Below are positions 1 through 19,900 of a stretch of DNA of 64,000 nt, piece after piece. The first letter of the stretch is position 1. Each line of letters starts with the position of its first letter. The notes beneath the pieces are model-generated. The model was given only the letters and a program-made list of their open reading frames with translations. It searched no databases and was not told the origin of the DNA. A program made the position numbers and the translations under genes. The DNA is from Mizuhopecten yessoensis (taxonomy: Eukaryota). Where the stretch lies: assembly GCF_002113885.1 (NCBI RefSeq), contig NW_018408866.1, positions 588,760 through 652,759 of the forward strand. Reading direction: 5' to 3'.

Positions 1-2870
1 GATTGTGGAAAACACTGATACTGACTGATGAAAACACTGGTACAGACTAGTGAAAACACTGGTACATAGTAGTGAAAAGACTGGTACAGATTGGGGAAAA
101 CTGAAAACACTGGTACAGACTGGGGTAAACACTGGTACTGACTGATGAAAACACTGGTACATACTAGTGAAAAGACTGGTACAGATTGGGGAAAACACTG
201 GTACAGACTAGTGAAAACACTGATACAGACTAGTGAAAACACTGGTACAGACTGGGGTAAACACTGGTACAGACTGGGGAAAACACTGGTACAGATTGGG
301 GAAAACACTGATACAGACTACTGAAAACACTGATACAGACTGGGGTAAATACTGGTACAAACTGGGGAAACACTGCTACAGACTGGGGAAAACACTGGTA
401 CAGACTAGTGAAAACACTGATACAGACTAGTGAAAACACTTGTACAGACAGGGGAAAACACTGGTACAGACTAGTGAAAACACTGGTACAGACCGGGGTA
501 AACACTGATACAGACTGGGGTAAACACTGGTACAGATTGGGGAAAACACTGGTACAGACTGGGGAAAACACTGGTACAGAATGGGGTAAACACTGGTACA
601 GACTGATGAAAACACTGGTACAGACTGGGGAAAACACTGATACAGACTGGGGTAAACACTGGTACAGACTGGGGAAAACACTGATACAGACTGGGGTAAA
701 CACTGGTACAGACTGGGGAAAACACTGGTACAAATTTGGGAAAACACTGGTACAGACTGGTGAAAACACTGATACAGACTTGTGAAAACACTGGTACAGA
801 CTGATGAAAACACTGGTACAGACTGGGGAAAACACTGGTACAGATTTGGGAAAACACTGGTACAGACTGGTGAAAACACTGATACAGACTTGTGAAAACA
901 CTGGTACAGACTGATGAAAACACTGGTACAGATTGGAGAAAACACTGGCACAGACTTGGGTAAACACTGGTACAGGTTGGGGTAATCACTGGTACAGATT
1001 GGGGTAAACACTGGTACAGACTGGTGAAGGGTAAAGACTGGTACAGACTGGGGTAAACACTGATACAGAGTGGGGTAAAAACTGGTACAGACTGGGGAAA
1101 ACACTGGTATAGACTGGGGTAAACACTGGTACAGACTTAAACACTGGTACAGATTGGGGTAAACACTGGTACAGACTGATGAAAACACTGGTACACACTG
1201 GTGAAAACACTGGTACAGATTGGGGAAATCACTGGTACAGATTGGGGAACACACTGGTACAGACTAGTGAAAACACTGTTACAGACTGGGGTAAACACTG
1301 ATACAGACTGGGGCAAACACTGGTACAGACTGGGGAAAAAACTGGTACAGACTGGGGTAAACACTGGTACACACTGATGAAAACACTGGTACAGATTGGG
1401 GAAAACACTGGTACAGACTAGGGAAAACACTGGTACAGACTGGTGAAAACGCTGATACAGACTTGTGAAAACACTGGTACAGACTGGTGAAAACGCTGAT
1501 ACAGACTTGTGAAAACACTGGTACAGACTGAAGAAAACACTGGTACAGATTGGAGAAAACCCTGGTACAGACTGGGGTAATCACTGGTACAGAATTGGGA
1601 AAACACTGGTACAGACTGATGAAAACACTGGTACAGATTGGGGAAAACACTGGTACAGATTGGAGAAAACACTGGTACAGACTTGGGTAAACACTGGTAC
1701 AGATTGGGGTAATCACTGGTACAGATTGGGGAAAACACTGGTACAGACTAGTGAAAACACTGATACAGACTGGGGTAATCACTGGTACAGATTTGGGAAA
1801 ACACTGGTACAGACTGGTGAAAACACTGATACAGACTAGTGAAAACACTGGTACAGACTGATGAAAACACTGGTACAGATTGGAGAAAACACTGGTACAG
1901 ACTGGGGTAATCACTGGTACAGATTGGGGTAAACACTGGTACAGACTGGGGAAAACACTGATACAGACTTGGGTAAACACTGGTACAGACTAGGGTAAAA
2001 ACTGGTACAGATTGGGGAAAACACTGGTACAGACTAGGGAAAACACTGGTAAAGACTGGGGTAAAAACTGATACAGACTGGGGTAAACACTGGTACAGAC
2101 TGGGGAAAACACTGCTACAGACTGGGGTAAACACTTGTACAGACTAGGGTAAAAACTGGTACAGATTGGGGAAATCACTGGTACAGACTAGGGAAAACAC
2201 TGGTAAAGACTGGGGTAAAAACTGATACAGACTGGGGTAAACACTGGTACAAACTGGGGAAAACAATGGTACAGATTGGGGAAAACACTGGTACAGACTA
2301 GTGAAAACACGGGGACAGACTGGGGAAAACACTGGTACAGACTGGGGAAAACACTGGTACAGATTGGAGAAAACACTGGTACAGACTGGGGTAAACACTG
2401 GTACAGATTGGGGGAAACACTGGTACAGACTGGGGAAAACACTGATACAGACTTGGGTAAACACTGGTACAGACTAGGGTAAAAACTGGTACAGATTGGG
2501 GAAAACACTGGTACAGATTGGAGAAAACACTGGTACAGACTGGGGTAAACACTGGTACAGACTGGGGAAAACACTGGTACAGACTAGGGAAAACACTGAT
2601 ACAGACTAGTGAAAACACTGGTACAGACTGGGGGAAAACACTGGTACAGACTAGGGAAAACACTGGTACAGACTAGTGAAAACACTGGTACAGACTGGGG
2701 GAAACACTGGTACAGACTGGGGAAAACACTGGTACAGACTAGTGAAAACACTGGTATAGATTGGGGAAAACACTGATACAGACTGGGGAAAACACTGGTA
2801 TAGATTGGGGAAAAAAGTGATACAGACTGGGGAAAACACAGGTACAGACTGGTGAAAACACTGATATATC
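1..2870. repeat. 22-bp minisatellite (ACTGGTACAGACTGGGGAAAAC variants), ~130 copies, intronic
   Basis: Continuous tandem units with variant cores (TGGGG/TAGTG/TGATG/TGGAG; AAAAC/TAAAC/TAATC); runs off the window start. The overlapping ORFs in several frames are repeat artefacts. Confidence 0.95.
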
Positions 2871-3063: not shown

Positions 3064-3241
3064 AGAATGTAATTTACATGTACACCTGTGTGCTCAATTA
3101 GAATGTAATTAACATGTGTGCTCAATTAGAATGTAATTTACATGTTCTCAATTAGAATGTAATTTACAGGAGTGCTCAATTAGAATGTAATTTACATGTG
3201 TGCTCAATTAGAATGTAATTTACATTTGTGCTCAATTAGAA
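3064..3241. repeat. 28-bp tandem repeat (CTCAATTAGAATGTAATTTACATGTGTG), ~6 copies
   Basis: Directly visible tandem units ending ~15 nt from the splice donor at 3257-3258. Confidence 0.9.
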
Positions 3242-3258
3242 ACATCATTCAGACTTAC

Positions 3259-3483
3259 TATTGTCAAATTCCTTCGAGCAGACATGACATCCTGATCTTG
3301 TGCTGATTGATAACTGTACAGGATCAAAAGGCTCTAGTGGACAGAAATTACAGTCATAACACTCTATACCGCCCGCCTCCTCACTGTAGTCATTGCCCCC
3401 TATCCCCGGGAACACTCCTCCAGGAATCACGTCTTTCTGATCCCAGTACACCTGGAACTCATTATAGGAACCGTCATTCCAAC
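3259..3483 (-). CDS. CUB gene exon 5 (Gly/acidic linker and start of three-finger-like Cys domain)
   Basis: TGTTTCAG acceptor, GTAAGT donor, 225 nt; IECYDCNFC...GCHVCSK. Confidence 0.85.
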
Positions 3484-6400
3484 CTGAAACAGAACATTAT
3501 AATATCTCTTGTTGATTATATGCAAGATCAGCAGATATAACACTTGACAATACCTGTAAATTATGTACTACAGTAACTTTAACTGATAGTCCTTTAAAAA
3601 AACTAGTATTCTTCCTCTGACAGGATTATTTAAACAATGCAAAGTATATTGCAAGGCAATCCTTAGTCCCCAAACGGTAATGATTTCTATATTTAACAAA
3701 CAGTACACTTATGTCAGGAAGCATACATGTAGCTCACAGTAGTATAGGGTTATAGTGACCACCTTCTTGCATTCCGCCATCTCAAGATGTCTGTGTACAC
3801 CAAATTTGGATACTCCAGGTGAAAAAGTATAGATATGCCATGGATAGACATTTTCAAAAGTAAAAGTCAAAGGTCAAGTCATAGGCCACAATGACCAAAT
3901 TCTTGCATTCTACATTCCATCATCCCAAGATGTCTGTGTACACCAAATCTGGTAACTCCAGGTGAAATAGTATAGAACATTTGCCCGGACAAACATTTTC
4001 AAAAGTTTAGGTCAATGGTCAAAGCATAAATCACAATGAGGACTTATTTACGTAATTCTTGCACTTTGCACTCACGACTTCATCTTACGATGTCTTTGTA
4101 CACCAAATCTGGTTACTACAGGTGAAAAATAGAAGATATGTGGCGGACAAACTTTATCAAACAATGAGGTCAAAAATCAAAGCATATATCACAGTGACCT
4201 AATTCTTGCACTCTGCACTCCACCATCCAAAGATGTCCCTAATTGTATGCCCTATCTGGTTACCCGGGTTAAAATGTATACAAGATAAGGCCAGGTGAAA
4301 AAACTATTTTTTTAAAGTTAAGGTCAAAGGTCAAATTATAGGTCACAGTGAGCTAATTCTTGCACTCTGTCATCTCAAGATGTCCTTGTACACCGAATCT
4401 GGTTACGCCCATCAGGTGAAATAGAATAGAAGAAATGTGCCAGACAAACTTCTTCAACGGAATGACAGACAAACGGAGTGCAAGCCTATAGTCCCCTCCC
4501 CCTAAGAACCAGTGGGGAACTAACAAACTAAGTGAGTGCCTTAACTATACCTCCTAGGTTAGCCGCAGAGGGGTACAGGTTCACTGGTAAAATATACCAT
4601 AGAAAAAGTCAGTCATGATGATTTATGATTTCTGCTTTCTTACAAATGACTTTATGTAAAAAGTCTTCCTTTTAATGAAAGGATCTTTAGGTGGGTTCCT
4701 ATATATAGCTATGCTGTACCTCCTAAGTTACCCCCAGAGGGGTACAGGTTCCCTGCATTCGAGTATGGATACTGGGAAATCCTCAACTTGAACCCGCCAA
4801 AGCTCTCTTTCCGACCGTCGGTAACAAACTGGACTGTCAGATGGTTTTGAGTTGTCTTGAATATCTGGAGATCTGCCATGTCTGCAGGTGAATTCTTCTT
4901 CCCACATATACCAGCGGGAGGAATATTGGGGAACATCTTGGCATTGTCAGGTGTTGGACCTTAAAAACAATTAGGAACAGACATCTGTTTCATTTCTATA
5001 TGTAATTAACAAAAACACCATCTTTAATGTAATTTGATAATTTCCAAGAATATTCTTTACAAACATTTAGCGTTTAATTGAGATCAAAAGATCACGATAA
5101 AAAAGATTTCAATATTCATGTAATTTTAAAAATATGAAATAAAGTAAAAAATATACATTAGCATGCGCACTGGAATTTTGAAGATAATTTATCTTGTTAA
5201 CAGCCTTATCTGAATGAATTAAAGTAATCTCAAAACAAGGAGAAAACAATACTCAAAATACTTACCATTATAAAGCTTTAGATAATCATAGCAGAATTTA
5301 GGATATCCCCTATCATCCATCTCAGCATAACTGTCTATTGCAAGGTAATCAATTTGAACTTCAATCTGGTTGTTTGGATGAGCTTCTATAGATACAATAC
5401 AGTTCCTGCCATCTTGGTAGCTGGTGCCTACGTTGGAGTTGACATCTTCAAAATCGCGGTTGTAGAATTGGTATCTGGTGTTTACGTAGGCTGGATTTCT
5501 GCAGAACTCTTCATTGTAAGTACAGATTGAACAGTAGGAAGTAGACTGAACTATGATGTCAGCTGAAAGTGTAAATATTTAATTATAAGGATTAGAGTTT
5601 ATTCATAAACTGTACACAAAGTGTTCATTCTTAGTCAAAATTTGGTTAAGAATTTGTGAGCAATCTATATTTAGTCTCCTATACCTCCGGAAAAAGATTT
5701 GAATAAAAATATGTCGAGAACCATTGTGTATAATAGGAATAAGATCTGATTTCAATGTTTGATACTTTCCCATCCCAAAAAAAAATACTCTTTTACAAAG
5801 TTTGGTAATTGTATAGCTGACAGAGCATATATATCGAGATTGCGCTCAGAACAAAGTCATTTAATTTACAGTGAACAAAGTGTCATGATCACAATACTGT
5901 ATATATTGCTAAGTAGGGGACAAAAGTCATAAGACCCAACCAATCATGTGACACATGCACACTGCCATATAAAGATATGCAAAATCTGGCAATTGTACCA
6001 TAGCTAACTGAGCAATTACCGGGGTACCATATAAGTGCCAGAAAAAGTGATGTACAGATCTAGACTGACAGAGGGACAGAGTACAAATTAAACCTAAAGT
6101 TCCCCATGGCCACCTCCCTTGGTATGAGTGGGGGACTAATTTAATGACATTCTATCTTCAGATGTCTGATTTCCTACTAGCTCTAGATCTAAATACTAAG
6201 AATACTAAATATTCTTCGTTATATCAAATCTAAGGTAGGTCGTAAATCATTAATTAAAATATATATTGCATTTATAAGACCAATTTTGGAGTATGCAGAC
6301 ATAGTATGGGATAATTGCACCTTACAATCTATTGAATTACTTGAATCTGTACAACTAGAAGCAGCTAGGATTATAACTGGTCATCGTCCAGGGACATTAC

Positions 6401-9400
6401 ACAATAAACTCTATAATGAACTTGGTTGGGAAACACTGTTTGCAAGAAGGTATAAACATAAACAAATACTGATGTATAAGATAATGCATGGACTCTCACC
6501 TCAATACTTACAAGATGTCAAAAAACCTTTTATTAACAATTATACTAACAATCCCTACCAGACTCTTTAACCCACCTATGTGTAGAACTAATAACTATTT
6601 TGACAGTTTTTTCCCCTTTAAGTGCCGCCATGTAAACACTATGGATACTGACATGTTGAACTCTCCATCTCTTGTTCTGTTTAAACAATTACAAAATAAA
6701 GATAGTTAATGACAAAGAAGTAACTACAACTTTTAAAAACGACGGTGAAAGAATTTGAAGGGTAAATATTATTCTTTGCCAATTAAGAAATTCCTGTAGT
6801 AATTTAAATTCTGATTTATATCATGACCGTTTAATAAATAGTCCAACTTGTGCTTGTTCTTTTGAATACAAAACAGCCTCTCATTATTTCTTCAATTGTC
6901 GACTGTATATCGAACAACGAAATACTTTGTTTACTTCTTTGAATGATACTAGTAAGCATAGCCATATGGATTTAAAGATATTTTTCAAGGTTGTCTTACA
7001 TGTGATCTGAATATAAACAGACAGATGCTAAGTCATATTCAGATTTTTCTTTGAAAAACAAGGCATTTTAATTTTTATATGCATAGAAAGCCATGATGCA
7101 TTATACTGAGATATAGTAAATCAAATATATATATGTCTTATTTTAATCTGAATCAAATAACAAAGTACAAATTTTTTGATGCATAATGATAAATGAGATT
7201 ACAGTTGAGTAGGTTTGTTATATCTTGTTTATTTTCTGTTCAATATAATAAACAGAAAATAAACATAATAATATATTGCCTTTCTGTCACATTATTCAAA
7301 TGTGTATTTTAATATTTACTCATAGACAGTATTAATAATTAGTAGCAATGACCTGCATGTGCACATACATGCACATGGACTTTGGTCAAAGTCTACTCTT
7401 ACTGTACATATGATATACTGACTGTGACTTTGCTTTATTTAGTAAGAAAATAATTGTATGTGTTTGAATGTATGATTGTGAGTTGTTTGTGTATTGTTAT
7501 TGTGATGTCCTATGAGTTCATCCCCTTTGTGTTTATCATGTCGGTGTTATCTCCCCTGATCTTTTAATTATAGTATTACTCTTTATACATATGTAACTTT
7601 TCATTACATAGTATCCTTAAATTAATTAATCATTATTGTTGTAACTTCATTGTATATATATTTGATCAAATTTTGATACAACGTTTAAACAAAGCCTATA
7701 TCGTATCATTAGGTGTGGAAGTCAATCAGACTGAAGCTATATATAGCGTGTGTATATGTGCGCTGAGTACGAGAGGTCAACTGTTCGATTTCGAGCTATA
7801 TTAATATATACAGTATAAATGTTATTTACATTGTTTACGTTGAATTGTTGTTATACATGTGTAGTGTTTATGTTGAATTGTTGTGTTATACATGTGTAGT
7901 GTTTATGTTGAATTGTTGTGTTATACATGTGTAGTGTTTATGTTGAATTGTTGTGTTATACATGTGTAGTGTTTATGTTGAATTGTTGTGTTATACATGT
8001 GTAGTGTTTATGTTGAATTGTTGTGTTATACATGTGTAGTGTTTATGTTGAATTGTTGTGTTATACATGTGTAGTGTTTATGTTGAATTGTTGTGTTATA
8101 CATGTGTAGTGTTTATGTTGAATTGTTGTGTTATACATGTGTAGTGTTTATGTTGAATTGTTGTGTTATACATGTGTAGTGTTTATGTTGAATTGTTGTG
8201 TTATACATGTGTAGTGTTTATGTTGAATTGTTGTGTTATACATGTGTAGTGTTTATGTTGAATTGTTGTGTTATACATGTGTAGTGTTTATGTTGAATTG
8301 TTGTGTTATACATGTGTAGTGTTTATGTTGAATTGTTGTGTTATACATGTGTAGTGTTTATGTTGAATTGTTGTGTTATACATGTGTAGTGTTTATGTTG
8401 AATTGTTGTGTTATACATGTGTAGTGTTTATGTTGAATTGTTGTGTTATACATGTGTAGTGTTTATGTTGAATTGTTGTGTTATACATGTGTAGTGTTTA
8501 TGTTGAATTGTTGTGTTATACATGTGTAGTGTTTATGTTGAATTGTTGTGTTATACATGTGTAGTGTTTATGTTGAATTGTTGTGTTATACATGTGTAGT
8601 GTTTATGTTGAATTGTTGTGTTATACATGTGTAGTGTTTATGTTGAATTGTTGTGTTATACATGTGTAGTGTTTATGTTGAATTGTTGTGTTATACATGT
8701 GTAGTGTTTATGTTGAATTGTTGTGTTATACATGTGTAGTGTTTATGTTGAATTGTTGTGTTATACATGTGTAGTGTTTATGTTGAATTGTTGTGTTATA
8801 CATGTGTAGTGTTTATGTTGAATTGTTGTGTTATACATGTGTAGTGTTTACGTTGAATTGTTGTGTTATACATGTGTAGTGTTTATGTTGAATTGTTGCG
8901 TTATACCTGTGTAGTGTTTATGTTGAATTGTTGTGTTATACATGTGTAGTGTTTATGTTAAATTGTTGCGTTATACATGTGTAGTGTTTATGTTGAATTG
9001 TTTCGTTATACATGTGTAGTGTTTATGTTGAATTGTTGCGTTATACCTGTGTAGTGTTTATGTTGAATTGTTGTGTTATACATGTGTAGTGTTTATGTTG
9101 AATTGTTTCGTTATACATGTGTAGTGTTTATGTTGAATTGTTTCGTTATACATGTGTAGTGTTTATGTTGAATTGTTGTGTTATACATGTGTAGTGTTTA
9201 TGTTGAATTGTTTCGTTATACATGTGTAGTGTTTATGTTGAATTGTTTCGTTATACATGTGTAGTGTTTATGTTGAATTGTTTCGTTATACATGTGTAGT
9301 GTTTATGTTGAATTGTTTCGTTATACATGTGTAGTGTTTATGTTGAATTGTTGCGTTATACATTTGTAGAGGCCCTCGCTGGCGAGCCACTCATGGACAG

Positions 9401-12085
9401 AATGTATATAGCCTGTTATTCCATCCATTTGACTATTACATCTGTCAATAAAATTTCCTACTAGCTCTCCTAATAGGAAAAGAAACAATTAATAACAGTA
9501 TTTGTATTTCCTACAATGTAGGTTTTCTTGTAACATGACAAGTATTCTTGACGACCCCTACTCTCTCTCCCTCCCCCCCCTCCCCCTCCCTACCTCATCA
9601 ATGAATAATCACTGTCTGTCTACGCATCCACACTTTTGTTTCGCCAGAGATTCTTTGAATTAAAAAAACTTATCTTATTGAAATTTGACATGGTGATACA
9701 CTGGGTATAGTACTTCTACTTCTTCTAAATGGTATTGACCAACTTCAACAATTTGAAGATAAAATGTCAGACGAGGAGTGAAACATGGAAAGAGATTGTT
9801 TTTAAAAGATACGAGATGGTCTAATTTGCGTTTGATAGGTGACGGTAGAGGGCTGATTTGAATAATTCCGTTGTGGGGCTCGAAATAATGTCAGGTGGGA
9901 GTTTATTCCACTCGGGTATAGTTCGAGGGAAGAATGATGCCTTTCTGGTCTGGGTTTTTGAGTGGGGAATTTGATACGAAAACTGGTGGTTTGTTCGGGA
10001 TTTTCTAACTGTAGGGATTAATCTGTCTGATTTTACGATAGCGACTTTCTGGTTTACAATGTTATGAAGCATGGTCAGACGAGCATCTCTACGTCTATCT
10101 GCTAGAGGGCGCAGCTTTAGGTGGTCCAACATTTCTGACACACTGGAGGTACGATGGTTGTACCTGTGCTTATTGAGCACATAGCGCGCTGCCCTTCGCT
10201 GGACCATTTCCAACTTGTCAATATTTGTTTGGGTGTGAGGGTCCCATACTGTACAGGCATACTCAAGTGATGGTCAAACTAATGATTTGTATGCCTGTAC
10301 TTTGGCTGATGTTGAGCCAATTTTAAGATTTCGTCTTAAAAAGCCTAGCGTAGAATTTGCTTTTGGGCAGATAGTATTTATATGTGAATCCCATTTAAGG
10401 TCAGATGATAGTGTTACACCCAGATACTTGGCCTGACTAAGATGTTCCAGTATGTGTCCATGTAAGTTCAAGGGCAGTCACTAAAATTTGACTGGGAATG
10501 CCAAGAGGGATAGGAGTTACAATCCATATCTAAAAACCAAATTGATCAAATTGAAATTAGACACTGTGATATACATGAATATAATGTGATATTTAGGTGT
10601 GACATGCATGGTGATTGATATACTGTGATATTTAGGTGTGACATGGTGATGGATATACTGTGATATTTAGGCGTGACATGGTGATGGATATACTGTGATA
10701 TTTAGGTGTGACATGGTGATGAATATTATTCAATTATAGCCTTTGGCTGAGGTCGATGCCTGAATTTATCAACCCGAGAAAAGACATATTAACAGAGGAC
10801 GCAGTCCGAGATCAATATATCTTTTATCGGGTTGATAAATCCAGGTATTGACCAAAGTTAAAGGCTACATTTGTTTTATTATTTTCAAAACAGTGATGTT
10901 AGCAATCTGAAAAAAACATAGCAAAAAGCTGCGGAAGCGGGACGATACGTTCGTTTGGAGACACGTCATTAATCTATTTTTAGAAACACCCAGTCCTTCA
11001 ACAAAAATCACACGCTCCAAGTCAATATCGGTTTTTATCGGTGGACACATGATTCGCTTCTGGCCAATCGCTTGTCGGGAATTATATAAAAAGAAATAAT
11101 AAACTGTGATATTTAGGTGTAATATGGTGATGAATATACTGTGATATTTCGGTGTGACATGCATAGCACTAGGCTTTCTGTTTACTCTTGCAATTAATAA
11201 ATATCTAACAATTTAAGCAGTATTTTTTCCCCGAATTTTCGAGGGTCAAAACACATATCAAATAGACGTGTCCTTTCACCCAAGTGTTGAACCCTTATTT
11301 TGAACAAAGAATCGAAAAGATACTCTCAAGGTCCAAATGAAAGCATTGAATACTTATGATTGGGGTTTTAGGTGTAACTTTTTGATGAGGTCAATACATG
11401 TGCTCAAGTCACTCTAACGGTCATGTTATAAGGCTTATAACATGACAGTTAAAGCTGGGATGACTTCAAAACAAAAAGTGAATGACTGTTAGATTGAGAC
11501 ACTATATATACACATATACAAACAGAAAAAGCCCACTGTACATATATTTTAGTAGTTTTTAATATTCACCTGTACCATACATAATCCTTAGAATACGAAG
11601 TAATACCTGAATATAGAAAGAGTTCCAGCCGTAGGGTCTACTACAAAATGCCGCTGATTTCGCTTTCACTCAGTTTGGAGACTGCTTAATTTGGGTTTGA
11701 GGAAGGGGTAGGGGGGTCGGTTCCTATTTTAACGCGAAGACAGAAAAGATACGAAAGATGCATTTAGAGTATGAACTTTGGACTTTCCTTCCCTTTATAC
11801 ACCTCCACCATATATTTGTTCTGTCTTATAATTAGAACCGAACCTCATTTGGTCACCAGGGTTTAGCCTAACTTTACCTGTACTTTGGCGAAAAAAACCA
11901 CGTATAAAACCCCTAGCTGCCTGTTTGTAACGGTTTCCGTAAATCTCTCCCATCGTATATTGTTGCTATTGCAAACTTATCTCACACAGTTGTAATCTGA
12001 ACTATATTAACTATTTTGTTAAATTACCTTTGAGGTAGCCAATCCAGGTAAATACAATCAAAACAAACAACACTGCGGCATCCAT
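3259..12085 (-). CDS. Secreted or cell-surface CUB-domain protein with a downstream Ly6/uPAR-like Cys domain (3' partial, spliced)
   Basis: Exons 12085-12028, 5562-5266, 4959-4720, 4583-4551 and 3483-3259 all have GT/AG boundaries and phase-1 junctions, giving an uninterrupted ~284-aa frame: MDAAVLFVLIVFTWIGYLKADIIVQSTSYCSIC...RNCIVSIEAHPNNQIEVQIDYLAID...FCYDYLKLYNG...ICG...NHLTVQFVTDG...GFKLRISQY...IECYDCNFC...GCHVCSKEFDN. Confidence 0.85.
3630..4527. mobile_element. Non-autonomous Helentron/HINE-like element with internal ~130-150-bp tandem subrepeats
   Basis: Repeated GGTCAAAGGTCAA...CACCAAATCTGG modules and a terminal hairpin TAGTCCCC...GGGGAACTA; left end resembles 50400-50445 and 53385-53430. 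Confidence 0.6.
4551..4583 (-). CDS. 33-nt symmetric microexon (VNLYPSAANLG), paralogous to the 3' end of exon 3
   Basis: TTTTACCAG acceptor, GTATAG donor, frame-preserving; near copy of exon 3 end (GNLYPSGGNLG). Confidence 0.6.
4720..4959 (-). CDS. CUB gene exon 3 (C-terminal half of CUB plus linker)
   Basis: TTTTTAAG acceptor, 240 nt; ICG...NHLTVQFVTD...GFKL matches the CUB consensus. Confidence 0.9.
5266..5562 (-). CDS. CUB gene exon 2 (N-terminal half of CUB); absent from the ORF track
   Basis: TTTCAG acceptor, GTAAGT donor, 297 nt open; CUB motifs C-I-V-S-I-E-A and C-Y-D-Y-L-K-L-Y-N-G. Confidence 0.9.
6190..7060 (+). mobile_element. CR1/L2-group LINE 3' fragment (degenerate)
   Basis: IYIAFIRPILEYADIVWDNC...VQLEAARIITG...LYNELGWETL post-RT motifs, with frameshifts downstream. 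Confidence 0.8.
7837..9368. repeat. 35-bp minisatellite (TGTTGAATTGTTGTGTTATACATGTGTAGTGTTTA), ~44 copies
   Basis: Near-perfect tandem array; variants are concentrated after ~8850. Confidence 0.97.
9821..10471 (-). mobile_element. 5'-truncated non-LTR retrotransposon (CR1/L2-group) ORF2 C-terminus
   Basis: AKYLGVTLSSDLKWDSHI...ANSTLGFLRRNL...LEYACTVWDPH...EMVQRRAARYV...SFFPRTIPEWN. Confidence 0.85.
10561..11160. repeat. 35-bp tandem repeat interrupted by a ~380-bp fold-back insertion (10725-11102)
   Basis: TACTGTGATATTTAGGTGTGACATGGTGATGGATA units occur on both sides of an insert carrying an inverted repeat at 10737-10867. Confidence 0.7.
12028..12085 (-). CDS. CUB gene exon 1, signal peptide (MDAAVLFVLIVFTWIGYLK)
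   Basis: AAAAATG start context, hydrophobic 19-aa leader, donor G|GTAATT; phase 1 matches the acceptor of the 5562 exon. Confidence 0.7.
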
Positions 12086-12095
12086 TTTTAAATCA

Positions 12096-12111
12096 TGACG
12101 TCACCGGAAGT
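12096..12111. promoter_or_regulatory. Adjacent CRE (TGACGTCA) and ETS (CCGGAAGT) motifs just upstream of the CUB gene ATG
   Basis: Both consensus motifs are exact and abut, 11 nt 5' of the ATG at 12085. Confidence 0.5.
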
Positions 12112-12655: not shown

Positions 12656-13359
12656 NNNNNNNNNNNNNNNNNNNNNNNNNNNNNNNNNNNNNNNNNNNNN
12701 NNNNNNNNNNNNNNNNNNNNNNNNNNNNNNNNNNNNNNNNNNNNNNNNNNNNNNNNNNNNNNNNNNNNNNNNNNNNNNNNNNNNNNNNNNNNNNNNNNNN
12801 NNNNNNNNNNNNNNNNNNNNNNNNNNNNNNNNNNNNNNNNNNNNNNNNNNNNNNNNNNNNNNNNNNNNNNNNNNNNNNNNNNNNNNNNNNNNNNNNNNNN
12901 NNNNNNNNNNNNNNNNNNNNNNNNNNNNNNNNNNNNNNNNNNNNNNNNNNNNNNNNNNNNNNNNNNNNNNNNNNNNNNNNNNNNNNNNNNNNNNNNNNNN
13001 NNNNNNNNNNNNNNNNNNNNNNNNNNNNNNNNNNNNNNNNNNNNNNNNNNNNNNNNNNNNNNNNNNNNNNNNNNNNNNNNNNNNNNNNNNNNNNNNNNNN
13101 NNNNNNNNNNNNNNNNNNNNNNNNNNNNNNNNNNNNNNNNNNNNNNNNNNNNNNNNNNNNNNNNNNNNNNNNNNNNNNNNNNNNNNNNNNNNNNNNNNNN
13201 NNNNNNNNNNNNNNNNNNNNNNNNNNNNNNNNNNNNNNNNNNNNNNNNNNNNNNNNNNNNNNNNNNNNNNNNNNNNNNNNNNNNNNNNNNNNNNNNNNNN
13301 NNNNNNNNNNNNNNNNNNNNNNNNNNNNNNNNNNNNNNNNNNNNNNNNNNNNNNNNNNN
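12656..13359. other. Assembly gap (704 N)
   Basis: Run of N. Confidence 1.
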
Positions 13360-13929: not shown

Positions 13930-16900
13930 GACATTTTAAAATATAGCTCTGCCGAGTGAGCTCGGGTCGGTCCACTGGGTGGACTAAAAACCAATCTTTT
14001 AATCATTCCGTATATATTTTTATGTAATTTTATAATGTTTTATTAACAATCGGCGATATTACGCAGGTGTACCGTGTCTGCTATAGTATAGCAACTCTGC
14101 TTCATTTTATTGAATATTTTATTGGAAATCTAATGGTAGACATACATTTTTGGGTCACGTGACTGCAATTTCCCGCGCTAGCTATCGTGCAACTGCCGCA
14201 ATAATACAAGATGGCTGCCCCCATTGCAACCAGATCATCAGGCAGACAACGGAAGCCAACAACATATTTCACTCCGTGAAAAATCAGATATCTGAAACAG
14301 AGATGAAGCGACAACTGGTGCGAGGGAAGTTGGTTATACTCTTAATAAATGTTCTGCGATTAGAAAGAAAATCTCTGCCGGGTAAAGGAGCTTAGATTGT
14401 GAGGGAACCTCAACAGGCGGCGGGCTGGTTCTAAAATTCTCTGCTGCAGCCTACGAATTTTATCGGGTTCAGATGGAAAAAGCTGTTAAACTAACTGATG
14501 GTATCATGGTAGATAAAAGTGAGAGCTATGACAAGAGCGGTTTGTGTGTCCGTGAGCTGTGGAAAGTGTCGGACTCACAGGCGAGGAAACTCCTGCTAGT
14601 AAGATTTACTCTATCAACCTATATCATACTACTTATTCTGCCCTTGTAAATGGATGTGATCTTTGTATATTCGTGTCCTATTTCCGCTCTATTGTCAATT
14701 ATATGAACGATAAGTCATTCAAGCATTTGAACAATCAGATCTCAGAAAAATGTAGCGAGTTACTGGCTCAGATGGAGAGAAGAGCAAGCTCTAGTTCTAA
14801 TATCGTGCGAAACAGGACAAAGAGCGACAGTTCAAGTCAGGAACCCAGCCCTAGTCAGGTAGCCAATCGCGACCTTTGTACCACTAACGCAACAGCAAAA
14901 AGTCAACTTGTTTCATCTGCTCAGTATTCTTCTATTTCCAATAGTGAAGGCAACATCATACTGACTCCTCATGCTGATCATGCCTGCGTCAGAACATCAT
15001 AGACAGCAGCCTGCAGACCAAGCTTCCCGAAACTAGCGTGAGTCAAGTGGAGCATCTAAAATCACTACAGACCAATATGCAGACGAGTGTTGCAAATACA
15101 AGATGTGAGAACTTCTCAACCAACCTGTCTGCTCCGAAAAGTAACTCTATTATAGAGGGCGATGGGAAGTCCTGCTCAACAGACACCCCTACCTCTCAGT
15201 CTACTCATGAGTGCACACAGGCCCTGGGTAAAGACTCCAAGCAACTACGCCAACAAGAGCTGAAATTAAGGAAAAGAGAGGACGAACGCAAAAAAGAAAA
15301 GATGGCTGTAGGGGAGGTTACTAAAAATGTATCCAGACTTCACTCCCATATTGTACACCTGGAAGAGAAAATAAAAAACCTTGAGGATACAAACAAAATT
15401 TTAAAAATGAAAGTAAACTCATCTATGTCAGATAATACCTCACCATGTAATTGTAACTCTATCAGTGGCTGTAAAGTCAATGAATCACAGGGGACACCGG
15501 CCGGCTATGCGAAGGATGACTCTCGAGAGGTTAAAACCCATACTTCAGCAAGTGATAGAGTGAGTGATCTGGAAAATACAGTAATCGACTTGAAATTGGA
15601 GCAACTTTATCACAAGATCAGTTCACTAGAAGAACGAAGAAGTCTTGCAGGGAAAATTCAAGACATCGAGATGAATCAACTTATAGGTAGGATTGAGACG
15701 ATAGAGGGACTCGGCCAACCTCAGAACATACAGCAGTAGCCCTTTTTTGGACCATCCCCAGGGATGTATCATCAACACATACCACCCACAGCATATTATC
15801 AAGGACCTCCATTGATAAGAAAACCAAATATCAACCGGAACCAGTTCAAGGAAACAGGGGGACAGGAGAAACTAAATGTGTCAACAAAAAGAAAGACCTT
15901 CCAGCAAGCAGTCGATAAGGTTGCGGATGAAATAACTACTCGTGCATGGGTGTCCGGAAAAAATGTACCCCCGGAGCTACAGGCTTAAATAATTCCAACA
16001 ACTCCACCTCGAAACCTTTCACACAAGGAAGGAAAGAACATGCAGAGGATACGGGCATAGATAAGCTAGAGGAATCCATCATGTTAGTCACAAACACTAC
16101 TCCATGTCCTAACTCGATTGCAGTGTCTTTTTTTAGATGTCAGCCCAACACGAAGGACGCCAATATAGCAAAGCTAGGAACGGTTTCATATAATTGTAAA
16201 AACTTCCTCAACACCTTAGACTGTATCGAGAATTTGACCAATATGGCCTCAATTATTTGTTTACAGGAACATTGGCTCCTCTACCATGAACTGTATAAGC
16301 TGCGCAGTACGCGAAGAAAATTCTGCTGTTTAGGTAAATCTGTAGACCAACACAACCCACGTCCACCTACGCAAAGACCAAGGGGCTACGGGGAGTTGCA
16401 ATATTATGGTGTACAAGCATTGATCACCTAGTAACTGAACTAGAAGAATGAAATGAACGAAAAGTATGTGTGGAAGTCAAAGGCAAACCCCGCCCACTTG
16501 TTATTGTTTCCGTCTATATGCCATGCGGAAATTCCAGGAATTCAGATTCTATGTATGAGGACTGCTTGATCATCCTACAGGAGATTACAAGGAACTATTT
16601 TGATACACATGATGTTTTTATCCTCGGCGACATGAACTGTGATCTCACAAAGACCTCTCCTCGTCAGTCAATACTAAACCGATTTATGAATGAGTGTGGA
16701 TTCCAGACCGAGTACACCAAAGAAACCTTTGAGCATCCAAATGGCAGAGATAATTCGACTATTGACTATGTCCTAGTTCATCAAACGTACAGTCAGGAAC
16801 AGGGCATGCCATCAATCGTCAGAATGGACGATCTTACCAGTAATACCTCGGATCATCATCCAATTATGGTAGTTGTACTCTACAACACTACATCAAAGTC

Positions 16901-19900
16901 GGATAACACTACTACTGATATACCAGCAAATCCCAGAAGGATAAATTGGAAGAAAATGGACAAGGCCAGGTATCAATAGTTGCTGTCAAAAAACCTTGAA
17001 GGTATTGACTGGGGGTACCTCTCAACTGAACTCATCACACTTCAAATTCAGGACATATTCTCCAGCTCTGCAGTTAGTGTTGCTCCACATACCACCAAGT
17101 TAAAGAGAAGTAAGAGGCAGATTTGGAACATCAAGATTGAAGAAGCTACAGCTTCTAATAAGGCAGCTCTTAGGCTGTGGAAAGAGCATAAAAGGCCATC
17201 AAAGGGTCCGATTACTGACAGAAGGAGAGAGGCAAAGAAGGAACTTCGCAGACAGAGGGAAATTGAGATAGGAAGAAAAAGGGATGACTATATGGGGTAG
17301 ATTATGGAGGCGAGAACGGGAGATAGGAAAACATTCTACCGCCTTATAGATCTGGTAAGGTAGTTCACTTAGTGAACTGACAGTTGATGACAAGACATAC
17401 AGTAATCCCAACGACATCCTACTGGGATGGAAAGAACATTTTAGTAAATTAGCTAGACCAGACCCGTCCAAGGATCACACCGACCAATGCAGGATGGGTG
17501 ATATACAGTTTGACATCGAAGTAATAAAATCCATATGCCAGGGGCAAAATCCAACCAGCGATGAAATGATAGTCCCCAGGATAGTCGAGGATGCAGTCTC
17601 GAGCCTAAATACCAACAAGGCTGAGGATGTATTCAACTTATCCGCAGGACATCTCAAGTATGGAGGTATTAACGTTACTGAGGTACTTGCCACCCTATTT
17701 AACCTGTTTATAGCTGAAGGGAAAGTTCCAGACTGTCTGAAAATTGGCCAGCTTACTCCTATCTACAAAAAGAAAGGCAATAAGACAATTGAGGCAGTTT
17801 TACGGATAAGAATCCAACCTATATTTAAACCACAACAAAACGCGCTCCAACGGGACTTCACTAGAGGGATATCTCCCCTTCGTGCTGGTCTTATTCTGCG
17901 TGAAGCTTTAGCCAACAAACCTTCATCCAAAATATTTGTGGCGATGCTGGACGCTAGGGCGGCTTTTGACACAGTAAGTCATACTATTCTTGACAGGAAG
18001 CTATTTAACCTCGGCATCAAAGGAAAGATATGGGAGGTTGTTCATGATCTCAACGTCTCTGCAAAAACCTCCATCAAATGGGAAGGATCTATGTCCGACC
18101 ACATCAATGTCCAACAAGGAGTCCGACAGGGGGGATCCTGAGTACGGATCTATACAAGATCTACATTAACAACCTACTGGATCGTATTGAGAAGTCAAGC
18201 CTTGGATCCAAAATTAGAACCGTGCACTGTGCGACCCCAGCATGTGCTGACGATGTTACGCTAATTGACCATACACAAGTCGGGCTTCAAACTCTCCTGA
18301 ACATTGTGAAGAACTATAGTGAAGAACACTACTATACGCTCCAACCAGCCAAATGTGAAATTCTCTCAGCAAACTGTAAGCATTCAGTGGATGAATATGC
18401 TCTACTCATGGTCGATTGGTGAGGATGTGCTTCCTATTGCCACAGAGTCAACACACCTTGCGGTAATCCATCACAGCAACCCAAACAAATCGGCACCTGG
18501 CACCATACAAAAGAACATCAAGAAAGGGAAATGTACTGTTTATGGGCTCATGGGTACAGGGTTTCACCGGAAAAACGCGCGAAACCCATCCACAAACCTC
18601 CATATACTTAACACGTATGAAGTTCCAATTTTCACGTATGGACTGGAAATACTAGGCCCAACAAACAAGAACCTGGAACCTGTGGAAACCGAATTTTGGA
18701 AATTACTAAAGCAAATATTCTCACTCCCTGGAAACGTGGCAGACGTTGCAGTGCATGTACTCACGGGAACGCTCCCATTAAAAGCTAAGATACACAAGAA
18801 CATGCTGAACCTATTCGGGTCAATCGCGTTAAAGCCCTCAGTTGAGACGGAAATTGCAAAGAGACAATTACTTGCAGCTAACCCGAAATCAAATAGCTGG
18901 TTTGAAAAAATATCCAACTTGTTATCAATATATGACCTACCTAGTGCTCAGGATGTAATGGATTCCGACATGTCCTATACGCATTGGAAGTCTAGAATCA
19001 ACAGAAACGTCAACGCCTATTGGGAAGCTTAGATAGTCAGTCAGTCAAAGTATTTCAAGTCCCTCAAATATCTAAACTGTATTAACTATAAGGCCGGAGT
19101 AATGCACCCGGCGCTATCCACCGTATCATCTGACAGAGGAGACATTGGAATAATGCCAGTAAAACTACGGCTACTGACGGGTACCTATCTTCTGCAGAGT
19201 AACCGGAGTGCCTTCAATCAAAACACTGAGGACCCCACGTGCCTTCTCTGTAAGCAAGGAGCCGAAACAAGGGAGCATTTTATTATGGATTGTCCAACCC
19301 TTTTGTTTCTGTACGTCAATCCCACCTTGCGGAATCATCTCAACATCTAGGTGACAATACAAGGCTGAACATGTACATTGCAGTTATTCTGGACTCGACC
19401 AGTGTTAGTACGTCTGACCCAGATCTGCGTGGAAAGGTGGAATTCATCTCGAGGCGGTTGTGTTATGCTCTTCACCGGCAACGTGAACTGTTTTTATCTA
19501 AGCTACCAGCTAACAAAAAGAAAGGTCTATAAGATATTGTGCCAGACTCGTGTATAAATGTATTAGTACTGGAGAGACTTTTCCCAAACAGTACTGGACA
19601 CCAGCTATTCGAGGAGACCCAGGTTGTGTGTATATGACATTGTGCGTGTTTTTTATAGAGTAATAGTTTTATCACATTCCTGCCGCATGCGTGTATATAC
19701 ACTCCGCTATCGTACGCCTCACTAACCTACATTTCCAGCACACACGCAGGTGCACACGCAGGCATACGCACACGGGGAGATATTAGCCAGGTGGCAAAGG
19801 GATAGTAGTTAGCGCCTGATAAAGCAGCTCCTGCGAATTCCTCATAATTTTTTTTTTATTGAATTAATGTTATGCTAATGGTATTAATTGTATATCTATG

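Follow-up and report, generated by a model that had tools for sequence, protein, structure and literature searches.

The window analysed here is a stretch of 64,000 nucleotides from the scallop Mizuhopecten yessoensis (contig NW_018408866.1, positions 588,760 to 652,759; G000:C5539:588760-652759), and the subject of this study is a gene on its minus strand that joins a CUB domain to a C-terminal domain of ten cysteines resembling those of the Ly6/uPAR (LU) family. Four exons of the gene lie within the span 3259-12085 and two more are located to the left of the window, past a run of N. The encoded protein is laid out as a signal peptide (residues 1-19), a CUB domain (approximately 40-180), a linker (181-236), the ten-cysteine domain (240-330) and a hydrophobic C-terminal tail. 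Our overall reading, to which we assign a probability of roughly 0.7, is of a six-exon, single-copy and expressed gene whose product would be a surface binding protein composed of CUB, linker and an LU-type (Quiver-like) domain and held at the membrane by a glycosylphosphatidylinositol (GPI) anchor. Both modules are known and the novelty lies in their combination, in a predicted protein that public databases already list without a name.

A six-exon gene extending beyond the window

Exon 1 (E1, 12085-12028, minus strand as for all exons described here; 58 nt) begins with the ATG and encodes MDAAVLFVLIVFTWIGYLK, which comprises residues 1-19 and the first base of codon 20. It is the signal-peptide coding part and is followed by a GT donor at 12027-12026 in phase 1. 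E2 (5562-5266, 297 nt, phase 1-1) encodes residues 20-119, with a CSICx6C edge followed by the N-terminal half of the CUB domain. E3 (4959-4720, 240 nt, phase 1-1) encodes residues 119-199, completing the CUB domain at 4784 (residue 177) and then opening a segment rich in Gly, Asn, Pro and Tyr at 4774-4720. E4 (3483-3259, 225 nt, GT donor at 3258-3257, phase 1) is divided between two parts of the protein. Its first part (3483-3371) encodes the second half of the linker, residues 199-236, as WNDGSYNEFQVYWDQKDVIPGGVFPGIGGNDYSEEAGG, and its second part (3370-3259) encodes residues 237-274, IECYDCNFC...GCHVCSKEFDN, which begin the LU-like domain and carry cysteines 1-5 of its ten. The sequence-only reading of this DNA had proposed each of these elements, and all are present in the exon translations. 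It had also proposed that the exons were in phase 1 and five in number. The phase was correct but the span holds four exons, given that the CxxCx6C segment is the start of E2, which RNA contigs span unbroken from 5264 to 5564.

The gene continues past 3259, as had been anticipated. To follow it, 20 kb of leftward sequence was retrieved, within which the locus L004 has its own numbering. Directly left of the window are 5,311 N, after which a 22-bp minisatellite resumes, followed by E5 and E6. These two exons lie approximately 6.6 and 7.0 kb beyond E4, across the minisatellite and the 5.3-kb N run. E5 (L004 3367-3296, 72 nt) encodes SYQNARRQCYSQTDYTYLLESLSD with cysteine 6, and E6 (L004 2992-2814) encodes GIDKVESYSGCKQFVTQYGRTVNYCFCQEDKCN then SSTTLLYNWTFLLLCVIATAVWPSLL and the stop codon, supplying cysteines 7-10, the following Asn and a GPI-type tail. 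Both have an AG acceptor in phase 1. The LU cysteines missing from E4 are therefore supplied by the downstream exons, which bring the total to ten and close the domain with CxCxxxxCN. Introns are GT..AG at every boundary and all five are in phase 1, split after the first base of the codon, as expected for a protein built by the shuffling of 1-1 modules.

RNA evidence came from two sequencing runs as contigs and two as raw reads, aligned to 3230-7800. The junction 3483/4720 is crossed by 17 and 31 reads in the raw-read runs and by one contig in each contig run, while the junction 4959/5266 is crossed by 45 and 20 reads and by contigs, and is present in all four runs. The exon that begins the LU-like domain is thereby linked to the CUB exons, as the sequence-only reading had supposed. 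Two loose ends of the RNA alignments account for the outer exons. The end at 5564 matches window positions 12030-12059 exactly over 30 letters, which is the end of E1. The end at 3257, carried by 82 reads and two contigs, matches L004 3336-3365 exactly over 30 letters, within E5. E1 is thus joined directly to E2, and E4 to E5. For the remaining junction between E5 and E6 in the scallop, the basis is the RefSeq model, the splice sites and their phase, and the orthologues rather than reads, and this counts against the six-exon structure. Overall, the spliced and expressed gene is real.

Three alternative gene models were rejected. A second E3 donor at 4732 (GGG G|GTAACT) is also in phase 1, but RNA reads use the donor at 4720 (GGA G|GTACAG). 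A model joining E4 straight to the last exon, which gives nine cysteines, was discarded once the loose end at 3257 revealed the 72-nt E5 carrying the tenth. An extra exon within 5565-7800 was dismissed because the RNA depth there is only repeat-derived (6290-6750) and E1 joins E2 directly.

The exons were searched one by one and whole-protein analyses were run on the matching database entry. All six exon translations are found in order, with one split-codon residue between neighbours, in a 356-residue protein of M. yessoensis (XP_021376841.1 / OWF39172.1, LOC110465388; P0002 here) that is labelled 'uncharacterized' in RefSeq and 'CUB domain-containing protein' in UniProt (A0A210PRU4). Since the exons match XP_021376841.1, the gene is already in the public annotation. 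The earlier description of the gene as hidden accordingly holds for the plain list of open reading frames only, as the RefSeq model LOC110465388 is public. The further proposal that the protein belongs to no named family agrees with these labels, and full-text literature searches for CUB together with an LU domain, and for the accession and run numbers, yielded no description of it. Relatives are few in protein databases. A HMMER scan with E2 alone returned eight proteins at E<=0.001 among 1.84 billion cluster representatives, six of them exon fragments and one the public full-length model. Searches with the full protein and with a six-sequence profile yielded just three 90% clusters out of 5.8 billion, and a word-index protein search with E2 alone found one exon fragment, its length window being limiting. 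Within the scallop genome, E2 and E6 queries for paralogues returned the gene itself only, and at the sensitivity of the search tool the gene is single-copy. A Pfam QVR search of the same genome, intended to gather reference LU exons for a profile-profile comparison, gave one half-domain match only, too few to serve as a comparator.

Expression follows the exon structure, with RNA depth restricted to exons except at interspersed repeats. In the two raw-read runs, exon depth is approximately 23-28 reads per kb per million, a rough upper bound since a few of the aligned reads derive from intronic repeats. Query words were present at about the exon share in 14 small runs drawn from eight studies. 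Two polymorphisms in exon 4 are seen in the RNA reads, at 3332 (E249, GAG>GAA) and 3401 (I226, ATA>ATT), and both are synonymous.

The introns and upstream region are rich in repeats. The 22-bp minisatellite occupies window positions 7-2863, with approximately 125 copies at 85% matches, and continues in L004 at approximately 3400-4689, lying within intron 4 on either side of the 5.3-kb N run. Its minus strand yields many long cysteine-containing fake open reading frames (SVPVFSPVCTSVFPSLYQCFPQ...). A 28-bp tandem repeat of 5.6 copies (3087-3241) starts 18 bases past the exon-4 donor. Intron 3 contains an interspersed repeat (approximately 3634-4500) with at least 45 genomic copies at 73-80% identity, on which RNA contigs of other copies stack at 3842-3994 with a word depth as high as 4450. 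Intron 1 contains a very regular 35-bp tandem repeat (7832-9369, 44 copies, 98% matches), which explains the strong GC skew in the bin at 8-10 kb, as well as tail fragments of the long interspersed nuclear element type at 9824-10273 (minus) and 6286-6570 (plus). At 12096-12103, 10 bases upstream of the start codon, the sequence TGACGTCA forms a perfect palindrome that is the consensus cAMP-response element and overlaps a two-codon upstream ATG. An RNA contig reaches 183 bases beyond E2, which would place the TGACGTCA site inside the 5' untranslated region if E1 is continuous. Further upstream are a run of 704 N (12656-13359), approximately 0.6 kb from E1, and a degenerate retrotransposon of the type without long terminal repeats (14500-19100, plus strand), split among several open reading frames, in which 16470-16976 matches an endonuclease and 17494-18138 a reverse transcriptase.

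The CUB domain, the linker and their conservation in bivalves

The CUB assignment is supported by both sequence and structure. With the whole protein as query, Pfam CUB (PF00431) aligns profile positions 15-108 of 110 to residues 62-177, starting at position 5437, and its 27.9 bits (E=3e-6) exceed the cut-off of 21.4. All six orthologues also match, the best at E=3.5e-8. E2 alone gives E=0.0077, and P0001, an exon 66% identical to E2, exceeds the CUB cut-off. The full-length AlphaFold model has a predicted local distance difference test (pLDDT) score of 43.8 overall and is moderate, at 55-67, in the CUB part. Foldseek against the Protein Data Bank (PDB) with this model gave 63 matches at E<=0.001, and nearly all of the approximately 45 that were listed contain CUB domains. 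The best has E=1.6e-6, and the target template modelling (TM) score is approximately 0.7 for isolated CUB domains. The matches include the TSG-6 CUB domain (E=2.2e-6, target TM 0.71), spermadhesins (TM 0.70-0.74), neuropilins, PCPE, C1r/C1s/MASP and Neto2. Among PDB sequences, searches with the profile, E2, E6 or the LU part of E4 returned no CUB or Ly6 chain. A designed Kelch-type repeat protein in the PDB scored E=2.3e-7, a match judged spurious because it is the sum of six 5-bit repeats, and a zf-Vps39_C match (E=0.026) was dismissed as a coincidence of the CxxC type.

Individual residues also conform to the family. C40, C74, C110 and C137 are invariant and fit the two CUB disulfides, with a pairing that follows the family pattern. 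The invariant CYDYLKLYNG corresponds to the CUB motif C-x-D-Y/F-L/V-x-I/L-x-D/N-G. An additional CxxC pair, C30 and C33, precedes the CUB domain in pteriomorph bivalves; a more distant homologue described below lacks it and starts with the canonical C-G-x-x. D96, D112 and D166 are invariant, although the D-x-S-N context after the third is not kept. These three residues correspond to the calcium site of calcium-binding CUB domains; with that context lost, binding by this CUB domain may or may not depend on calcium.

The linker that follows has 56 residues, QYPYSNAGNLYPSGGNLGGWNDGSYNEFQVYWDQKDVIPGGVFPGIGGNDYSEEAGG, dominated by Gly, Asn, Pro and aromatic residues, and is encoded by 4774-4720 and 3483-3371 on the minus strand. 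No other part of the protein is as well conserved: identity between the scallop and either the oyster or the pearl oyster is 69-71% here, compared with 50-55% for the CUB and C-terminal domains. Its consensus is QYPYSNxGNLYPxGxNxGGWNDGSxNEFQ...IPGG...GNDY and 33 of its 56 columns are invariant. Pfam reports no family for the linker, and the structure model leaves it disordered; such strong conservation despite predicted disorder is a small puzzle.

The sequence-only reading had called for a search for orthologues of the same architecture, and they are present in four scallops counting M. yessoensis, the pearl oyster and the Pacific oyster. Identity is 85-91% for Ylistrum balloti, Argopecten irradians and Pecten maximus, 52% for the pearl oyster Pinctada imbricata and 51% for the Pacific oyster C. 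gigas (LOC105347086). The six exons recur in P. maximus, where the locus extends over 21.5 kb. In C. gigas the orthologue is one uninterrupted open reading frame of 385 codons on contigs of approximately 2.1 kb assembled from sequencing runs. This frame is independent evidence for a single mRNA. Together with the P. maximus exons and the distant homologue described next, it shows that the fusion of CUB and LU-like parts is not an artefact. A homologue of 30-45% identity is encoded by two genomic contigs (L010, 3795-5736, and L011, 1075-3012), with exons resembling E2, E3 and E4 at the same three intron positions and phases. It shares the linker motifs, the sequence INCYVCNSCP...GCYRCGK and the first five LU cysteines, and the contigs stop before the last exons. 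Contigs with the exon-like fragments P0003 and P0004 are too short to display the architecture. Full-length members are known here only from pteriomorph bivalves, namely the four scallops, the pearl oyster and the Pacific oyster. With this one distant homologue in addition, the lophotrochozoan scope suggested from the sequence was too wide.

The ten-cysteine domain and the C-terminal tail

LU domains have been described as 60-90 residues long, with ten plesiotypic cysteines of which the last is followed by an Asn, a phase-1-flanked exon set and a GPI signal in the last exon (Leth et al., PMC6600238). The scallop gene agrees with this description, the GPI signal being a putative one. C240, C243, C246, C264, C267, C282, C308, C322, C324 and C329, together with N330, are invariant in six species. 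Their spacing over residues 240-330 is C-x2-C-x2-C-x17-C-x2-C-x14-C-x25-C-x13-C-x-C-x4-C, then Asn, with 91 residues from the first cysteine to the Asn. The exon set is flanked in phase 1 and the tail lies in the last exon, E6. The LU-like domain is spread over three exons, the first of which also encodes half of the linker.

Sequence comparison points in the same direction. The QVR family (PF17064, clan CL0117) is the sole three-finger, LU-clan family reported by Pfam, and in the scallop and the oyster it is aligned over its entire length (1-86 of 86). In the ESM Atlas, all top feature matches of residues 234-356 are QVR or Ly6-clan clusters, with a score of 0.89 that the tool itself rates as a lead only. 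A domain-only structure was modelled from the oyster mRNA contig (L013:1528-1821) with an alignment of six sequences. It contains two beta-hairpins where fingers II and III are expected, while its first 31 residues, corresponding to the first finger, are not resolved. Among the best 35 of its weak Foldseek matches approximately 14 are three-finger folds, including the TbRII, BMPRII and AMHR2 ectodomains, LYPD6B and a cytotoxin, with the top matches at E=0.15-1.4.

A number of observations weigh against an LU assignment. All QVR scores are below the cut-off of 27.3 bits: the scallop protein reaches 8.2 bits (E=7.1) and the oyster domain on its own 10.9 bits (E=0.98). E6 alone, aligned to positions 59-86 of 86, reaches 15.8 bits (E=0.028), again below the cut-off, and QVR is reported in three of the six orthologues with a best E of 3.3. 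AlphaFold confidence is low in this region, with pLDDT of 25-49 in the full-length model and a mean of 52.2 in the domain-only model. No Foldseek match of the domain-only model is significant, the best having E=0.15 with a root-mean-square deviation (rmsd) of approximately 10 Å. VIA-align Z scores do not exceed 3.2, and Lynx2, CD177, TEX101 and bucandin are scattered among unrelated folds. Profile and exon queries found no Ly6 chain among PDB sequences. The cysteine spacing is also atypical for LU domains, with C1-x2-C2-x2-C3, x17 before C4 and C8-x-C9 in place of the classic CC. For the proposal of a Ly6/uPAR domain made from the sequence, the cysteine signature is therefore borne out while the statistical standard is not reached (QVR 8-16 bits versus 27.3, pLDDT approximately 50, Foldseek E=0.15).

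Alternatively, the C-terminal domain could have another, possibly lineage-specific, disulfide-rich fold, with the CYxC start and C-N end being coincidental and the protein pairing a CUB domain with a novel module. In its favour are the absence of an LU-clan Pfam model at cut-off and of a PDB sequence match, the low confidence of the structure models and fold searches, and the unusual spacing of cysteines 1-5. We nevertheless regard such a fold as improbable, given that the domain has the size of an LU domain and keeps its ten cysteines and the Asn without variation, QVR is the only LU-clan family and aligns along its full length in three orthologues, and the ESM Atlas neighbours are uniformly of the LU clan. 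Three-finger ectodomains are, in addition, strongly over-represented among the weak Foldseek matches, a GPI-type tail directly adjoins the domain, and the introns are in phase 1 as in LU genes. On balance, the segment 240-330 probably adopts a true LU (three-finger) fold, for which the characteristic disulfides are 1-5, 2-3, 4-6, 7-8 and 9-10.

The protein has only two hydrophobic segments, residues 1-18 and 338-356, and no internal transmembrane segment. By inspection the C-terminus reads C-N-S-S-T-T-L-L-Y-N-W-T followed by FLLLCVIATAVWPSLL to the end, so that a candidate for the tail signal sought after the tenth cysteine is present in E6 as a hydrophobic, GPI-type sequence following Cys-Asn. 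Small residues come after the C-N (S-S, with G-G or S-G in orthologues), then 8-10 polar residues and a hydrophobic run to the very end. Identity between the scallop and the oyster or pearl oyster is 16-27% in the tail and 37% in the signal peptide (the Pinctada model is without its N-terminus), compared with 50-71% elsewhere. The low conservation of both termini fits sequences that are removed. Based on these features, the tail is most likely a GPI signal that is exchanged for the anchor.

Two observations would suit a protein that is not GPI-anchored, with either a short transmembrane anchor or secretion into the extracellular matrix, for example as a component of the mantle or shell matrix. 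The oyster and pearl-oyster tails end in basic residues (KRLR and YYRL), which makes a short membrane anchor possible and so tells against GPI anchoring, and the Gly/Asn/Tyr-rich residues 181-236 recall matrix proteins. CUB proteins and Gly/Tyr/Asn-rich stretches both occur in the mantle and shell matrix. However, the tail has 16-19 residues, starts 8-10 residues after the small residues (N-S-S, N-G-G), lacks a cytoplasmic domain and varies more than any other part of the protein, all of which are usual features of GPI signals. Segment 181-236 is also conserved residue by residue (33/56 invariant), unlike low-complexity matrix repeats. A non-GPI protein of either kind is thus unlikely.

Proposed role and known systems

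Our results suggest a model in which the signal peptide is cleaved off, a GPI anchor takes the place of the tail and the mature protein is displayed at the outer surface of the plasma membrane. In that position its CUB domain, together with the conserved segment and LU domain, would bind extracellular or membrane partners. The protein may then act as a co-receptor, an auxiliary subunit or an adhesion or recognition factor and would be neither an enzyme nor a channel. A binding role is favoured because neither CUB nor LU domains are catalytic and both serve to bind proteins.

A more specific role is suggested by analogy, in which the protein would be an auxiliary subunit of an ion channel or ionotropic receptor, combining a CUB domain like that of NETO, SOL-1 or LEV-10 with an LU domain like that of Lynx1 or Sleepless. 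Whole-protein neighbours in the ESM Atlas include an arthropod 'suppressor of lurcher 1' CUB cluster (score 0.84), neighbours of the C-terminal part are 'sleepless/qvr' clusters, and Neto2 CUB structures are among the Foldseek CUB matches. The scores, though, are in the range that the tool calls leads only, and both CUB and LU domains serve many unrelated functions, such as complement, BMP/TGF-beta signalling, septate junctions and fertilisation. The top weak fold matches are moreover TGF-beta-family receptor ectodomains and not Lynx-type toxins, and we consider a channel-specific role very doubtful. Equally speculative is a broader proposal in which the CUB-linker-LU architecture would define, in bivalves and possibly in lophotrochozoans more widely, a class of auxiliary subunits of receptors or channels that are GPI-anchored, with the linker as a new binding or structural element coupling the modules and the LU domain as a true mobile 1-1 module.

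If the three-finger fold is correct, the gene would be a conserved and expressed case of an LU domain shuffled via phase-1 introns beside another classic 1-1 module, and would provide a data point on the diversification of mollusc surface-receptor repertoires. If the auxiliary-subunit class were to hold as well, LU domains could act as true mobile 1-1 modules, which family reviews have doubted. According to a 2019 review, LU domains are hardly ever found except singly, in tandem or on TGF-beta-family receptors, and the review terms them a 'proto-module' (PMC6600238). The practical value is modest: a set of bivalve proteins now labelled 'uncharacterized' gains a domain annotation, and a 56-residue segment without a known counterpart is flagged.

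Several known systems share parts of this architecture. NETO1/2, SOL-1, SOL-2 and LEV-10 present, as the scallop protein would, one or more membrane-tethered extracellular CUB domains, Neto2 providing a structural match and the arthropod SOL-1 cluster a language-model neighbour. Unlike the scallop protein, they are type I transmembrane proteins with LDLa or several CUB domains and a cytoplasmic tail, and have neither an LU domain nor a GPI signal. The scallop protein has a single CUB domain, no LDLa Pfam match and no transmembrane helix, and shows no specific sequence relation to this group beyond the CUB fold. The ectodomains of TGF-beta, BMP and activin type II receptors place a three-finger fold within a multidomain membrane protein, as the scallop protein probably does, give the top non-significant Foldseek matches of the domain-only model and share a helix-containing region between the fingers. 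In contrast to the scallop domain, these ectodomains are tied to a kinase through a membrane-spanning helix. Their disulfide patterns are also different, and the matches (E=0.15-1.4, rmsd approximately 10 Å) reflect general fold resemblance only.

GPIHBP1 and other LU proteins with a non-homologous N-terminal extension offer a parallel in layout, in that a GPI-anchored LU domain is preceded by a functionally important segment outside the LU fold but encoded on the LU side. In the scallop the acidic, Tyr-containing GGNDYSEEAGG occupies the position before the first cysteine. The extension of GPIHBP1 is instead a disordered acidic stretch without a CUB domain, and that protein is restricted to mammals and has no sequence similarity to the scallop protein. 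A 2026 survey of invertebrates reported LU domains together with seven-transmembrane, C1q, fibrinogen-like, MAM, Ig, Kunitz and other partners in molluscs and arthropods (PMC13719153). The scallop protein resembles these non-standard architectures in joining an LU-like domain to another extracellular module in a mollusc. It differs in that CUB is absent from the listed partners, although a Pfam-based screen may have missed so divergent an LU domain (8-11 bits against QVR).

Quiver/Sleepless-type GPI-anchored Ly6/uPAR proteins, represented by QVR, are comparable at the level of the C-terminal half. Known members are single-domain proteins of 120-150 residues, whereas the scallop protein adds the CUB domain and the 56-residue segment upstream, scores far under the family cut-off, has the spacings C1-x2-C2-x2-C3 and C8-x-C9, and distributes the domain over three exons compared with two. 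What the two have in common is a ten-cysteine domain of approximately 90 residues with a CYxC start and a C-x4-C-N end, a phase-1-flanked exon set and, directly after the domain in the last exon, a hydrophobic GPI-type signal.

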